A DNA stretch of 63,093 nt, the filler included, from Octopus bimaculoides (lineage: Eukaryota), in assembly GCF_001194135.2 (NCBI RefSeq). It is 10 parts of 9 records of this genome, joined end to end, with 100 filler letters (N's around TTAATTAATTAA, not from the genome) between each part and the next. Parts side by side here need not be neighbours in the genome. Positions count along the whole stretch, not along the records: positions 47,172 to 52,714 come from NC_069008.1; 9 more parts are not named here. The stretch is one strand, 5' to 3'. The notes beneath the pieces were generated by a model, which was given only the letters and a program-made list of their open reading frames with translations, searched no databases and was not told the DNA's origin. The position numbers and the translations under genes are program-made. Positions 47,172 to 52,844 of this stretch are shown here, in pieces (within the stretch, counting starts at the first letter, position 1; each line of letters starts with the position of its first letter).

Positions 47172-47420
47172 AATAAGAATTTCTAACTTCCGGTCAGCCA
47201 TTGTTATGATCGGCCATTATTATGATTGACCGTTGACTGAACACTATTCAATTTTTTTTCTCCGTGTTTTTCTCCTTGTCTCCGTATTCTTTCTGTTGAA
47301 GAGCGTAGCTCGAAACGTCAAAGACTTTCCGTATTCCCGAGCGTCATACTAATATATACTTTTGTTATTTACACCACCTGTCCTCGTCTGTTGTTATTAT
47401 TTGTATATTCTCCCATATAT
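47172..47420 (+). mobile_element. Penelope-pLTR-like short repeat with hammerhead motif
   Basis: Shares the hammerhead and flanks with 29140-29260. Confidence 0.65.
47288..47324 (+). ncRNA. Minimal type I hammerhead-like motif (A6U), predicted cleavage after C47319
   Basis: tcttt-CTGTTGA-a-gagc(gta)gctc-GAAA-cg-TC-aaaga: 5-bp stem I, 4-bp stem II, ACGT stem III, GUC triplet. Confidence 0.65.
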
Positions 47421-47434
47421 ATATATATATATAT

Positions 47435-47600
47435 ACGACGGGCTTCTTTCAGTTTCCGTCTACTAAATCCACTCACAAGGTTTTGGTCGGCCCGTGGCAA
47501 TAGTAGAAGACACTTGGCCAAGGTGCCACGCAGTGGGACTGAACCCGGAACCATGTGGTTGGGAAGGAAGCTTCTTACCACACAGCCACTCCTGCGCCTC
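47435..47600 (-). mobile_element. SINE AB head and core
   Basis: RC ggcgcaggagtggctgtgtggtaagaagc...ggttcagtcccactgcgtggcaccttggccaagtgtcttc. Confidence 0.85.
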
Positions 47601-47707
47601 ATATCTTAATCAATGATTTAAATATTGGAAGAAAGCACACATAACTCATCTGCAATATTATTTTATCTAGTAGTAGTAGTAGTAGCAGCAGTAGCAGCAG
47701 TAGTAAC

Positions 47708-47741
<34 letters not shown>

Positions 47742-47818
47742 ACAATAGTAGTAGTAACAGTAGTAGTAGTTGTTGTTGTTGTTGTACTTGTTATTGATGT
47801 TGTTGTTGTTATTTTCAG

Positions 47819-47871
47819 GATACGGAGTCGCTGATTCCATGGCCATCTTCATCCGCCTGAGACAAAACTGA
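47819..47871 (+). CDS. Terminal coding exon (G)YGVADSMAIFIRLRQN* of an upstream paralogue of the secreted-protein gene
   Basis: ttattttcag acceptor, phase-1 start, stop 47869-47871, AATAAA at 47971-47976; ADxMAIF motif recalled as the C-terminus of the molluscan family matching exon 52366-52544 (inference, not searched). Confidence 0.6.
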
Positions 47872-47970
47872 CCAATCACAATTTATATCTAATGCACCTA
47901 CCGTTGTTGTTGAGCACCGTCCATTCCAAAATGACCACCACCACTGAGCACGTGTCAGCTATTGTCACCG

Positions 47971-47976
47971 AATAAA
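47971..47976 (+). terminator. Polyadenylation signal AATAAA
   Basis: 100 nt after the stop of the 47819-47871 exon. Confidence 0.45.
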
Positions 47977-47989
47977 GTTTCCACTTTAA

Positions 47990-48390
47990 CTACTCACATT
48001 TCTCCCCCGCCCCCACGCTCTCTCTCTCACTCCACCTTTCACTGTCACTGTCACTCCACCTCTCACTCTCACTTCACTCCCACCTCTCACTCTCACTCCA
48101 CCTCTCACTCTCACTCCACATCTCACTCTCACTCTCACTCAACATCTCACTCTCACTCCACCTATCACTCTCACTCTCACTCCACCTTTTACTTTCACTC
48201 CACCTTTCACTCTCACTCCACCTCTCACTCTCACTCTCACTCAACATCTCACTCTCACTCAACATCTCACTCTCACTCTCACTCCACCTTTTACTTTCAC
48301 TCCACCTTCACTCTCACTCCACCTCTCACTCTCACTCAACCAATCACTCTCACTCTCACTCTCACTCTCACTTCACTTCCACCTCCCTAA
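47990..48390. repeat. (CTCACT)-based minisatellite with ~18-bp higher-order unit
   Basis: cacctctcactctcactc repeated with variants. Confidence 0.9.
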
Positions 48391-48981
48391 CTAACAGGTG
48401 AACGAACAGGTAGATTATTATACAGATTTTAGTTCTAATTTTAATTTTAAACCCCTCTTTTTGTCTTCTCTTATATTCCTTTTTTTTTTAAATTAATTAT
48501 CTGTGAAAAGTCGTCGGATATTTATCTCAAAACCCGTCCTTTTGCACATAATTGAATTTCACGAATTTGGAGAGAAATCTTCAATGCATCTGTTAATGCA
48601 AAATGTTGCCATCGAAACAAAGTGCAGCAAGTTTTATCAACTTACCTCTACGCACTGCCGCAATATCTACAAAAAAATATTTCTTTCTGCATTTGGCATT
48701 TTAAAGAATCTTTAATGAATTTCTCAAACTGTCTTTAGAACACTGCTCTCTACATCCTAAAGACAAAGAGCACCGAGTCTTTCATTGTGGTCCTCAGATA
48801 ATTCTTTATCAGACCCAATTTACTCAATGACCTCTCTCTCTCTCTCTTGAACACTTTGTGACCATCAATCTCAAAATTATTTTAAGGGCTTCATTAATAC
48901 AAGGAAAGGGTTCATTCAGCAAGCCCTTCGTTATGGATTACTCCTACTCCTAGCGAGGTTGGCTTTAAACCATGTGACAGT

Positions 48982-49300
48982 GAAGATGCGTGGCTTAGCG
49001 GTTCGTGTATTTCGCTCATGAAAGTAAGGTCCAGAGTTCAATTCCCGTCACCGCATTGTGTCCTTGGACAAAACACTTTAATTCACGTTACTGCAGTTGA
49101 CTCAGTTGGCAGAAATGAGTAGTACCTGTAATTCACAAGGGGCCAGCCTTGTTATATTCTATGTCATGCTGAATCTCCCTCACAAATACGTTAATGGTAT
49201 GCATGTCTGTGGAGTACTCAACCACTTGCAAGTTAATTGCACGAACAGAGTGTTCCGTTGATCAGATCAGCTGGAACCGACTTAGTGCCAGTAAAAACCA
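48982..49300 (+). mobile_element. tRNA-derived SINE sharing the family D core but with a different tail
   Basis: tggcttagcgg...gagttcaattcc...tgtgtccttggacaaaacactttaattcacgttactgcagttgactcag. Confidence 0.75.
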
Positions 49301-49319
49301 CAAGATGACCTCCACTGGT

Positions 49320-49868
49320 ATTGTACCAAAGAAAGTAGTGGTTTTCTGATTGCAGCCCTCCCGTGAAATCTGGCTTTGTGCAGCTACTGGTGAACAGTTT
49401 TTGTGGAAACTGGGTTCTCAAAGTGGTCATTAAGCTCTGCAGTAATTTTGGGAGCTGTACTTTTGTGATCCTTACTAATAATTTGTGTAAGAGTCCAATG
49501 GTCCCTATCTGAAAGCTTTGGTTTTTTTTCGGAGTTTTTGTTTTGACGAGGAGATTTTTCCCTCTTTCTCAAAGGCTGTCATTACTTTCGAAACAGTATT
49601 TCTTGATACACCAAACATTTCAGCTGTTTTGGTTACGCTAGCACGTGTCATACGAGCACCAACAACTTGTCCTCTTTGAAAGTCCGATAGATCTGTCATT
49701 TTAATGAATTTTAATTACCTTTTTCTGGTGATATCTGAAAAGAAACAGCAATTTTAGCAAAACATATTAAGCAACACTAATTAAAAAACCAAAAAACATA
49801 AAAATAAACAAGCTTTTGGCGGTTTTATAGATATTTCAAAACTTTGATGCTATTTTGTCCAACCCCTG
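49320..49868 (-). mobile_element. Tc1-family transposon, 5' TIR and transposase N-terminus (3'-truncated)
   Basis: RC TA-caggggttggacaaaata TIR; MTDLSDFQRGQVVGAR..SVTKTAEMFGVSRNTVSKV, KLSDRD..LTQII..TAPKITAELN..PVSTKTV. Confidence 0.9.
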
Positions 49869-50492
49869 TATATGTGTGTGTATATATATATATATGGATT
49901 CTTAGACAACACAATACAGAACTATATAACCAACTATATACAACTATATACCACAACAACAACACCTCTACCACAATCACCATAACAACCACCACCACCA
50001 ACAACAACAACAACCACCACCAAAACAAGAGCAACAATACCCTATTGATCACACGCCTGTCTATCTACCCAGTACGTTTAATGAAACGTGCCTTGTTATA
50101 ATGAATTTATAATAAACCGAGGGTCCTTTTGTTTTCTGTTGGGAAACAATATTTGAAGTGGACAATCATCGGTGTGAATGGTATGAATACCAGCAACAAT
50201 TACTGGACAGTTGTGGACAGTTTTCATATCATTGGACGTTAGTTACAGCAGGAATCATTGCTGCTATCAGCGGACAGTCTGAGAACCTAAGCTCTGTCTT
50301 GGCATTCAAAGAGAGTGCTAACCTCTGTCGCAGTTTTGGAAGCAGGGGATAATATTGAGATTTTTAGGCAGTCTTTATATTTGCGGACATTACTATTAAA
50401 AGTGGACGGTTGTTCGAGCAGTGGACATTACTATTAAAAGTGGACGGTTGTTCGAGCAGTGGACATTACTGGACAGTAATAGGGGACAGTCC

Positions 50493-50556
50493 TGACGTCA
50501 GTAACTCGGTTGACCACGAAACACATAGGTGCTGCCTTTTTCGTCAACAAACAAAG
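50493..50556 (+). promoter_or_regulatory. Candidate promoter/non-coding first exon: perfect CRE (TGACGTCA 50493-50500) and donor AAG/GTAAGG at 50557
   Basis: Motifs read directly; would splice to the acceptor at 51691 ahead of the signal-peptide ATG (inference). Confidence 0.4.
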
Positions 50557-50669
50557 GTAAGGGCTGTTTCATAATCTCCCACTTACTTTGTGTGTGTGTG
50601 TGTGTGTATGTGTGTGTGAGTTCCTTTATATCCGTGTGTGTGTTTGTGCATGTGTAAGTGTTAGATTTG

Positions 50670-50965
50670 GGATTACGGTGAGGGGTTTAACTGATAAAAT
50701 GTTGGGTTCGCTCGCGATCATAAGATTATGGTTTCCGAATCGAGCAGTGCATTGTATCCTTGAGCAAGGTACTTCATTTCCACGTTACTTCACTCCACTC
50801 ACCTGGAAACTAATTACAAGTGATAACCAGAGGAATGTCCACCCCTGTGAAGGACTGGTGTCCTGTACAACAGGTAACCTTCACCGGGTAGTCTTCTAAT
50901 CTTGGTCACTTTTAAATGCTCCAGAAACCAGAAGAAGCTCCGGCCTCTTGGACCTGGAGGCTTCA
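50670..50965 (+). mobile_element. Old tRNA-derived SINE with conserved metazoan-type core and tail
   Basis: ttgtatccttgagcaaggtacttc...cactccactcacctg...cccctgtgaaggactggtgtcctgt...atgctccagaaaccagaagaagctccggcc. Confidence 0.65.
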
Positions 50966-51179
50966 GGCAGACTTTTACTGAAAACTTTATGGTGCCTCCA
51001 CCTGGAAAGACGAGAGAAAATATCTCTCTTTGTTTAGCCCTAGGCTGGCTGTGATTGAGCAGATCTATACTCGAAGCCATCTCGTCAGTTTATTCAGAAA
51101 TACGGTCGTCATGATGACATTATCTTTTGGTGATGTTTTTGTTGTTGCTGTCATCATTGGCGGCGTCTTCTTGTTTTGC

Positions 51180-51387
51180 ATCAGAGCAGGTCTGTAGTAC
51201 TTTGCTCCAAGACGTTCCAGCTGTGACCACCCCGTGGCTGTGTGCTTCGTAAGTCCCAATGCCAATGGTTATGTGATCCATATGCTTGGTGTACCCTTAT
51301 CAGACGGGTAGTCATGATGGCTGAACTGGGCTTCGTATATTTGTATCCCAGAGTCACTTTGATGGCATCCGCTGCTCTCTCTCACTC

Positions 51388-51424
<37 letters not shown>
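51180..51424 (+). mobile_element. Retroposon 3' end with (AAT)n tail
   Basis: GC-richer body ending gctctctctcactc followed by (AAT)n 51390-51423. Confidence 0.5.
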
Positions 51425-51703
51425 GAGCTAATTACACCAAGTTACAAAGGGGTCAGCGTCGGGATTCGGCCCTTTGAAGGATGTGTGACAGCAGAAACGC
51501 TACAATTTCACATATTGTGAGTGTGGCAAGCTGGTCCAACACTTGTAATTTATTTTTCTTGTTTTTTAAAATACATTTCATACACCTCTCTCTCTCTCTC
51601 TTTCTCTCTCACCATCTCTCCCTCTCTCTCTCTCACACACACACCCTCTGATGATCCTAAAACGAAAATGCTTCAATTTCGCCCATTCCAGTCAAAACCA
51701 AAA

Positions 51704-51869
51704 ATGCTGCTGCTGCTTCTAATCCTTGCAACGATCCTGACCGTTTCCTCGAATCAGGGATCTCCTGGAGCCTACTACAAATCTTTGGTCCCTGGTTACT
51801 CCTATGATTACGTTCGGACATCAACAGAAGAATTCTCCACAACAAGAAGTCTACTGGAATGTTCCGTCA
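51704..51869 (+). CDS. First coding exon of a secreted protein: signal peptide plus start of a PAN/apple-like segment (cut by gap)
   Basis: Acceptor cccattccag at 51691, aaaaATG, MLLLLLILATILTVSS then NQGSPGAYYKSLVPGYSYDYVRTSTEEFSTTRSLLECSV; PAN assignment rests only on the SLLEC pattern. Confidence 0.7.
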
Positions 51870-51885
51870 NNNNNNNNNNNNNNNT

Positions 51886-52140
51886 AGGATGTGTGCAGTG
51901 CCCAGTAGTGCAATTTTCTGTATGTTATATATATTTGTAAGTCCTGGTGTTTTTGTTATGTATTTGCCTGAATATTTTTTTATTATACCTAAGGCACCTA
52001 CTATGATAGGAATTGTTTCTGTTTTTAGATTCCACATTCGAGTTACCTCTATTTCCAGGTCTTTGTATTTTGAAAGTTTCTCCATTTCTTTTAGGGAAAT
52101 GTTGTCATCTGCTGGTATTGATACATCAATTAGAAAGCAT
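51886..52140 (-). mobile_element. R4/Dong-like LINE C-terminal fragment in an intron, 5' junction at (TAA)n
   Basis: CFLIDVSIPADDNISLKEMEKLSKYKDLEIEVTRMWNLKTETIPIIVGALG..ALLGTAHIL; abuts (TAT)n 52141-52195. Confidence 0.9.
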
Positions 52141-52148
52141 TATTATTA

Positions 52149-52196
<48 letters not shown>

Positions 52197-52365
52197 CTTG
52201 AACACTTACATTTATTAGTCTACAAGTATTTTTTACCTCTCTTTAATGATTATGTCTGGTCTATTAGCCTGGATCGTTCTGTCATTTTTTATCTTAAACG
52301 ACTGGTTCAGGATGTTGTTGTTGTTGTTATTATTATTATTGTTGTTGTTGTTGTTGTTATTACAG

Positions 52366-52544
52366 ACAGCGAATGGATTAAAACCTACGCCATATCAATG
52401 GGAGCAAATTCGTTAATCTATAATTCCATACTCAATATAGGAAGTCCTTCAACATGGAATGTGGACAAATGCATTGGTAGCTATTGTCCGAATTTTTTCC
52501 GACACCCTCTGCTTGATATGTGGAACAAACTTCCGATTGATGAG
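52366..52544 (+). CDS. Internal coding exon of the same secreted protein (uncharacterised molluscan-type extracellular domain)
   Basis: ttacag acceptor, GAG/GTATGT donor, 179 nt phase 1 to 0, stop-free: SEWIKTYAISMGANSLIYNSILNIGSPSTWNVDKCIGSYCPNFFRHPLLDMWNKLPIDE. Confidence 0.8.
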
Positions 52545-52844
52545 GTATGTATACACATATTCTAATGCTGTATATACTCTTGAAGAATGCCACAGTAAAT
52601 TTTCCTATTTTTGTATTTATTTTAATTATGATGCATAAATAGCTATTTTAATCCAATACCGTTAGTGATGTGTATGAGGGATTTCTATTCAGTCGGGTGA
52701 TTATTCGCAACACCNNNNNNNNNNNNNNNNNNNNNNNNNNNNNNNNNNNNNNNNNNNNTTAATTAATTAANNNNNNNNNNNNNNNNNNNNNNNNNNNNNN
52801 NNNNNNNNNNNNNNATATATATATATATATATATATATATACTA

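Follow-up and report, generated by a model that had tools for sequence, protein, structure and literature searches.

PAN domains are established modules for binding proteins or carbohydrates, as in the HGF, prekallikrein and MIC4 families. In a 63,093-nucleotide window of Octopus bimaculoides DNA (the whole stretch analysed, made of parts of the genome joined end to end), the piece from 47172 to 52714 contains parts of two neighbouring genes, hereafter gene A and gene B, which we assign with high confidence to a single family of octopod proteins with a predicted PAN/apple-fold domain. Gene A is the RefSeq gene LOC106881875 (protein P0063, XP_014787877.1, 203 amino acids), and gene B, starting about 3.8 kb downstream of the last exon of gene A on the same strand, is judged by sequence comparison to be a very recent duplicate of it.

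The octopod N-domain of about 85 amino acids is predicted to share its fold with the HGF/plasminogen N domain and with the PAN or apple domains of prekallikrein/factor XI, MIC4/AMA1 and nematode PAN proteins, and is likewise extracellular and disulfide-containing by prediction. It differs from them in scoring below the Pfam thresholds and in having two conserved cysteines only, and the octopod proteins combine a single PAN domain with an unrelated domain in place of a kringle, a protease or any other known partner. The FREP and C-type lectin expansions of molluscs offer a second comparison, having in common with the octopod family many diverged, clustered copies, small secreted cysteine-containing products and recent duplication, although no relationship of sequence or fold to them was detected. 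The genes in the window share sequence family, chromosome cluster and, in the exons that are visible, the five-exon structure with annotated RefSeq members such as LOC106881875, LOC106873068, LOC128251093 and LOC118768521. Unlike these, gene B has no gene model in the record examined, and the model of LOC106881875 is itself truncated at the N-terminus. The annotation thus holds one truncated RefSeq model and lacks its near-identical neighbour, both from assembly gaps.

The tandem gene pair

The piece is identical at 5543 of 5543 positions, N included, to positions 16182-21724 of a longer locus sequence, L002, and corresponds to about 16,892,978-16,898,520 of chromosome CM046628.1 (assembly GCA_001194135.2). 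Within L002 it forms a contig island flanked by N runs at L002 14571-16181 and 21725-23853, and N makes up 9579 of the 26881 bases of L002 as a whole. The piece is an intergenic junction in a tandem gene cluster, and the locus overall is an ordinary multigene, gene-family locus. Its features related to the two genes are as follows (window coordinates unless L002 is named).

47819 to 47871, plus strand: last coding exon of gene A (exon 5, phase 1), identified by translation, tblastn and the acceptor TTTTCAG/GA
47872 to 47995 (end approximate), plus strand: 3' untranslated region (3' UTR) of gene A, with AATAAA at 47971-47976 and matches to gene B and Octopus sinensis
50290 to 50556, plus strand: conserved upstream module of gene B, recurring upstream of paralogues and conserved in O. 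sinensis
51692 to 51869, plus strand: gene B exon 1, cut by an assembly gap, identified by family alignment, with ATG at 51704
51870 to 51884, no strand: assembly gap of 15 N, hiding part of exon 1 (about 132 nt or more), the exon 1 donor and the first bases of intron 1
51885 to 52140 (256 nt), minus strand: interspersed repeat copy in gene B intron 1, 97% identical to two copies in another locus, L004
52366 to 52544, plus strand: gene B exon 2 (179 nt, phase 1 in and phase 0 out), with acceptor TTACAG/AC and donor GAG/GTATGT
L002 11659-11837, 12523-12726, 14329-14493 and 16829-16881: exons 2, 3, 4 and 5 of gene A, placed by tblastn

A preliminary description of this DNA, made from the sequence alone, had proposed a hidden tandem array here, with a terminal exon and polyadenylation signal followed 3.8 kb later by a signal-peptide exon and then by a clean 179-nt exon, and each of these elements was recovered. 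The last exon of gene A follows an acceptor AG at 47817-47818 and reads, split codon included, (G)YGVADSMAIFIRLRQN up to a TGA stop, the terminal-exon peptide being GYGVADSMAIFIRLRQN. Alignment of P0063 to L002 by tblastn gave 100% identity at L002 16828-16878, equivalent to window 47818-47868, and the peptide of 47819-47871 is also 100% identical to the C-termini of the family proteins P0021, P0024 and P0052. The AATAAA at 47971 lies 100 nt 3' of the stop, and the 3' UTR of gene A shows 96.6% identity with the sequence 3' of the gene B terminal exon and 86.7% with the O. sinensis orthologue. Only the tail of gene A exon 1 is visible, directly after a gap at L002 7732-9972; because the rest of the exon falls in this gap, the RefSeq model begins at an internal Met (MSYYRS; L002 9973-10018). 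The suggestion that the genes were hidden from annotation therefore applies to the uncalled downstream copy, the upstream exon being the annotated last exon of LOC106881875.

Exon 3 of LOC106881875 (L002 12523-12726) additionally contains a 12-residue insertion, SLSYGQSTPWND, that other members lack; the SPWNDL motif seems to have been duplicated locally here.

The ATG at 51704 of gene B opens a frame, MLLLLLILATILTVSSNQ..., that continues as far as 51869, next to the gap, and the N-terminus encoded by this exon reads MLLLLLILATILTVSSNQGSPGAYYKSLVPGYSYDYVRTSTEEFSTTRSLLECSV. It comprises a signal peptide, called by eye as MLLLLLILATILTVSS, followed by the initial third of the PAN-like domain (...PGYSYDYVRTSTEEFSTTRSLLECSV). 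The N-terminus as a whole (MLLLLLILATILTVSS...LVPGYSYDY...LLEC) shows 57-70% identity to family N-termini and retains both P-G-Y-[ST]-Y and the first conserved Cys. Exon 2, in phase 1, reads (N)SEWIKTYAISMGANS...CIGSYCPNFFRHPLLDMWNKLPIDE, with the full peptide (N)SEWIKTYAISMGANSLIYNSILNIGSPSTWNVDKCIGSYCPNFFRHPLLDMWNKLPIDE; the C-terminal domain begins with this exon, which has the motif C-x-G-x-[FY]-C-P-N-F-F-R-H-P-x-L-D-x-W. This peptide is 98% identical to P0052 over 49 aligned amino acids, and over the same span the downstream copy is 98% identical to LOC106881875. Past the next gap, the terminal exon of gene B was found at L002 24449-24501, encoding GYGVADSMAIFIRLKQN before a TAA stop. The boundaries and phases of gene B agree with the family for exons 2 and 5, the end of exon 1 and the whole of exons 3-4 falling inside gaps. 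Gene B was not among the gene calls of the chromosome record examined; the likeliest reason is that gaps in the assembly have taken out exons 3-4 completely and exon 1 in part.

The nucleotide identity of gene A and gene B reaches 97.8% for exon 2 and 97.3% for the opening 110 nt of intron 2; for exon 5 it is 96.2%, for the 3' UTR 96.6%, and for the final 151 nt of intron 4 only 89.8%. Outside these blocks the two regions showed no detectable homology. The copies can be told apart by an AGT/CGT codon in exon 2 (S versus R) and by AAA/AGA in exon 5. Since the closest O. sinensis gene (encoding P0021, in locus L008) is only 80-87% identical, the duplication is younger than the species split. The last exon of gene A and the first exon of gene B lie on the uninterrupted stretch 47172-51869, so their tail-to-head order is directly seen. 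For this pair the proposed tandem arrangement stands, whereas the wider array proved to be of mixed orientation.

The high identity of the two copies (about 97%), the N runs that fill the region and the missing annotation of gene B could also be read as signs of an assembly artefact, in which an uncollapsed haplotype or a mis-scaffolded contig of LOC106881875 was placed beside itself. Such an artefact is very unlikely, considering that the terminal exon of gene A and exon 1 of gene B share one unbroken stretch (47172-51869), that the copies end in different stop codons (TGA in A, TAA in B) and that their 2-4% divergence, differing flanking repeats and limited homology outside exons are far above the allelic expectation. 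Heterozygosity in O. bimaculoides is reportedly low.

Decay of gene B into a pseudogene is a rather improbable but more serious alternative. Young tandem duplicates often decay, gene B is missing from the gene calls and its exons 3-4 are not visible; all parts that are visible are nevertheless intact, with open frames, canonical AG/GT sites, a conserved ATG, a stop and an upstream module of its own. A 2.1-kb N run occupies the place where exons 3-4 should lie, so that the integrity of gene B can be judged on its other exons only, and its splice junctions, start codon and expression are all predictions from the genome.

Upstream module and start codon

The conserved module at 50290-50556 lies about 1.1-1.4 kb upstream of the gene B start and recurs on the same strand upstream of three paralogues. 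Its core at 50421-50620, which reaches slightly beyond the donor, has 91% identity with the orthologous position in O. sinensis, above the conservation of the coding exons, and the donor itself, CAAAG/GTAAGG at 50556/50557, is conserved. The module contains TGACGTCA at 50493, and eleven same-strand GGAC[AG][GT]T motifs were counted in window 50205-50556; the whole piece has 13 against 1.9 expected, for a pattern picked after viewing the sequence. In the simplest reading, the module is probably a promoter with a non-coding leader exon that would be spliced to an acceptor at 51691, with translation starting at ATG 51704.

The acceptor-like TTCCAG before gene B exon 1 ends at 51691, and both this acceptor and the start at ATG 51704 are plausible. 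An alternative in-frame ATG at 51668 would add MLQFRPFQSKPK (51668-51703). In O. sinensis, this position holds a GTG together with a 4-nt frame-breaking indel, while CCCATTCCAG/TCAAAACCAAAAATG is conserved. Indirect support for the acceptor at 51691 and ATG 51704 comes from O. sinensis, in which ATG 51668 has no conserved counterpart, and from the conserved leader donor at 50556/50557. The alternative N-terminal extension MLQFRPFQSKPK fits the M-[FY]-Q-F start annotated for P0001 and other paralogues, and start-codon usage may differ between subfamilies.

Two further observations concern the module: a perfect 38-bp tandem repeat of 2.3 copies occupies 50385-50470 within it, and the O. sinensis locus has a second, inverted module copy at L008 800-600.

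The gap in exon 1

Exon 1 is 333 nt long in P0001 and P0019 (111 codons plus one base), and the window shows it up to about family codon 67. The part hidden by the gap at 51870-51884 amounts to about 44 codons, for which the family pattern is ...ALNSQSEFF.YNKVS..CKNYSPK...YYR. No family-like coding sequence was found after the gap in any frame, and from the sequences on either side the flanks are judged not to be continuous. An in-frame read-through of the 15 N (open reading frame (ORF) 51521-51940) was considered and rejected, since the sequence after the gap is a repeat and the continuity is accidental. The repeat at 51885-52140 is the likely cause of the assembly break; its two copies in L004 lie about 2.4 Mb away on the same chromosome. 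On its minus strand, a 72-amino-acid ORF at 51867-52085 (MEKLSKYKDLEIEVTRMWNL...IPIIVGALG...) gave no Pfam match and presumably resembles a motif of invertebrate retroelement ORFs.

The length of such a gap is an estimate only, and its right flank is a repeat, typical of scaffold joins, so the signal-peptide exon and the 179-nt exon might belong to different copies, with a whole further copy perhaps hidden between them. We consider this quite improbable, because the order of exon 1, exon 2, gap and exon 5 fits one gene, intron 1 of paralogues spans 0.7-3.9 kb, and a single gene is the most economical account. Both exons are accordingly treated as parts of gene B.

Family membership and distribution

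The preliminary description had placed the peptides of the two genes in one uncharacterised molluscan extracellular family, and sequence searches bore out their common membership, matching both to the same proteins with no split into unrelated families. In an exhaustive HMMER search of 1.84 billion representatives, the 59-amino-acid peptide of gene B exon 2 matched P0001 best (E = 4e-30, 88% identity). Of 18 proteins at E <= 0.001, 15 were family members; the other three, unrelated proteins with fn3 repeats or DUF5651, were set aside. A word-indexed search with the same exon gave no match, the query being too short for the index. On one and the same set of proteins, the three peptides of the window fall at the N-terminus, at about residues 100-170 and over the final 17 residues; given this shared alignment and the match at E = 4e-30, the coding pieces are not chance ORFs. 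The last of them, encoded by 47819-47871, carries the family pattern [AG]-D-[SA]-[MIL]-A-I-F-I at the extreme C-terminus on a separate short last exon, within which D, A, I, F and I are invariant or nearly so.

Searches with a full-length member retrieved 54 family clusters, and a 27-sequence profile retrieved 70. The named hits came only from O. bimaculoides, O. sinensis, O. vulgaris and Argonauta hians, all labelled 'uncharacterized' or 'hypothetical', and one UniRef entry (A0A0L8H6T8) is named 'Apple domain-containing protein'. Further members were found in a transcript (P0018, Logan run SRR24189498) and in assembly GCA_054771915.1 (P0017). The family is molluscan, then, in a narrow sense, its named members having been found only in octopods. 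Paralogue identity ranges from 40 to 88%, and P0001, P0019 and P0021 have five coding exons with identical boundaries. As far as detectable by sequence comparison, the family appears to be octopod-restricted and rapidly diversifying. Literature searches by LOC identifiers, UniProt accessions, octopus apple domain and octopus-specific secreted genes returned nothing on it, and gene B is thus a new member of a family that is already in databases and unstudied.

Family loci were located at 13.45, 13.63, 14.44, 14.96 and 16.88 Mb of one 18.6-Mb chromosome, a span of at least 3.4 Mb. Searches of three loci with tblastn each found another family gene or exon within 10 kb, on the opposite strand. The wider array is a dispersed cluster of mixed orientation and is not uniform. 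In O. sinensis and O. vulgaris, members lie mostly on one large contig each, in runs of consecutive LOC numbers.

Several side observations concern other members. Upstream of gene A, the opposite strand carries a family exon 3 at L002 5180-4950 (minus strand), where there is no gene call, with an upstream-module fragment on its 5' side at L002 6486-6421 (minus strand); it may be another unannotated family copy broken by gaps. The O. vulgaris models P0051 (446 amino acids) and P0036 (450 amino acids) each contain two family N-termini (residues 4-55 and 258-307 in P0051) and probably merge neighbouring tandem genes into one model. Some family members carry the UniRef names 'C-type lectin domain-containing' and 'ADP-ribosyl cyclase', which look like naming artefacts.

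Protein architecture and predicted structure

Members are about 290 amino acids long and consist of a signal peptide, a PAN/apple-fold domain of about 85 residues and a beta-rich Cys/Trp domain of about 185 residues. The family alignment shows a hydrophobic N-terminal signal sequence, followed by an N-domain with P-G-Y-S-Y and two conserved Cys (five in the distant P0018), of which only the first precedes the gap in the window. In the C-terminal domain, Trp, Arg, Lys, Phe, Gly, Cys, Pro, Tyr, Ser and Asp occupy invariant positions in the pattern W-I-K...C-x-G-x-[FY]-C-P-N-F-F-R-H-P...W-F-S...S-P-W-x-D-L...C...G-W...C...Y-S...A-D-S-M-A-I-F-I, and two disulfides are probable.

Structure prediction, which the preliminary description had suggested as a check, yielded confident AlphaFold2 models for full-length P0021 (predicted local distance difference test score (pLDDT) 84.9, predicted template modelling score (pTM) 0.80) and for the C-terminal domain of the gene A product (pLDDT 85.6, pTM 0.82). 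The N-domain of P0021 matched the HGF N domain (3hmr) in Foldseek with probability 1.0 (template modelling (TM) score 0.64, target-length normalised; root-mean-square deviation (rmsd) 3.1 A over 85 columns), and also matched the PAN domains of AMA1 and NK1 with probability about 1.0. This evidence for the PAN fold, in which a beta-sheet packs on a central helix, comes from the related full-length P0021 and not from the window gene itself. Profile searches with PF00024 (PAN_1) and PF08277 (PAN_3) put none of 27 family members above the gathering threshold (21.4 bits for PAN_1), with best E-values of 0.0052 and 0.0055 and three of the 27 members matched in each case. A Pfam scan of the window peptides, including the fragment from gene B exon 1, gave no match, and the only result of sequence and profile searches of the PDB was a marginal match to a Toxoplasma MIC4 apple domain (E = 0.048). 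The sub-threshold PAN_1 and PAN_3 matches and the marginal MIC4 match agree with the Foldseek result in pointing to a PAN/apple fold, as had been proposed for some N-termini of the family.

For the C-terminal domain, no relative was found in Pfam, in the PDB by sequence or profile, or by Foldseek against the PDB and BFVD (best E 0.64). It could be a very diverged beta-sandwich or lectin-type fold, fibrinogen-related or galectin-like, which would make the protein a conventional lectin. Weak Foldseek rows of the full-length model to fibrinogen-like domains (probability 0.3-0.44) and of the C-terminal model to congerin and galectin (probability <= 0.1) lean that way, yet they stand at an rmsd of about 11 A, TM <= 0.31 and E > 0.07. 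Furthermore, the C-terminal domain alone gave no fibrinogen-like match among its best 50 Foldseek rows, and no sequence match to fibrinogen-related or galectin families was found. A lectin of this kind is consequently unlikely. The specific fibrinogen-like and galectin-like assignments were rejected, as the Foldseek search of this domain against PDB/BFVD returned no hit better than E = 0.64.

A bolder and still rather doubtful possibility, to which we give somewhat more weight than to the lectin, is that the C-terminal domain is a genuinely new, octopod-born domain or fold that was fused to PAN and amplified to dozens of copies on one chromosome. It would then underlie an octopod-specific extracellular function, in skin, sucker, mucus or egg secretion or in self/non-self recognition, with the copies sharing a promoter and leader module more conserved than the proteins.

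Possible function

From their domain architecture, the products of these genes may tentatively be regarded as soluble secreted binding proteins, a proposal we hold at less than even confidence and nonetheless rate above the bolder one for the C-terminal domain. Each family gene would be transcribed from the conserved upstream module with its short non-coding leader exon, and the product would enter the secretory pathway and be released as a soluble, disulfide-stabilised extracellular protein. It might then bind a ligand, either protein or glycan, for which the PAN/apple module would offer one binding surface, and the many diverged copies could supply different specificities, as in other tandemly expanded families of recognition or secretion products. 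This proposal is weakened by its basis in domain architecture only, as the PAN fold names no ligand and the larger domain gives no clue. The octopod restriction of the family is tempered by the scope of the searches (the exhaustive one used the 59-amino-acid exon only, and the profile search was bounded by the word index), which may have overlooked more remote relatives in other lineages.

The family belongs with those secreted families of octopods that are taxon-restricted and have expanded in tandem, and its larger domain combines a confident predicted structure with no PDB or BFVD match. If its expression is tissue-specific, the family would offer a tractable case for studying how lineage-specific genes arise and expand in cephalopods.

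Repeats and other elements in the piece

The piece is AT-rich eukaryotic DNA with many microsatellites and repeat copies. Rfam and tRNA scans over it returned nothing relevant. Short interspersed repeats at 47414-47600 and 49119-49278, in which ARAGORN found no tRNA, have many copies of 78-95% identity on both strands in all fetched octopus loci. Two adjoining ORFs at 49384-49699 (minus strand) represent the N-terminus of a decayed Tc1/mariner-type transposase (HTH_23 at E = 1e-6, HTH_Tnp_Tc3_2 weak). A CTCACT-based satellite of about 370 nt (period 6/42) occupies 48013-48385, beginning about 40 nt past the poly(A) signal of gene A.

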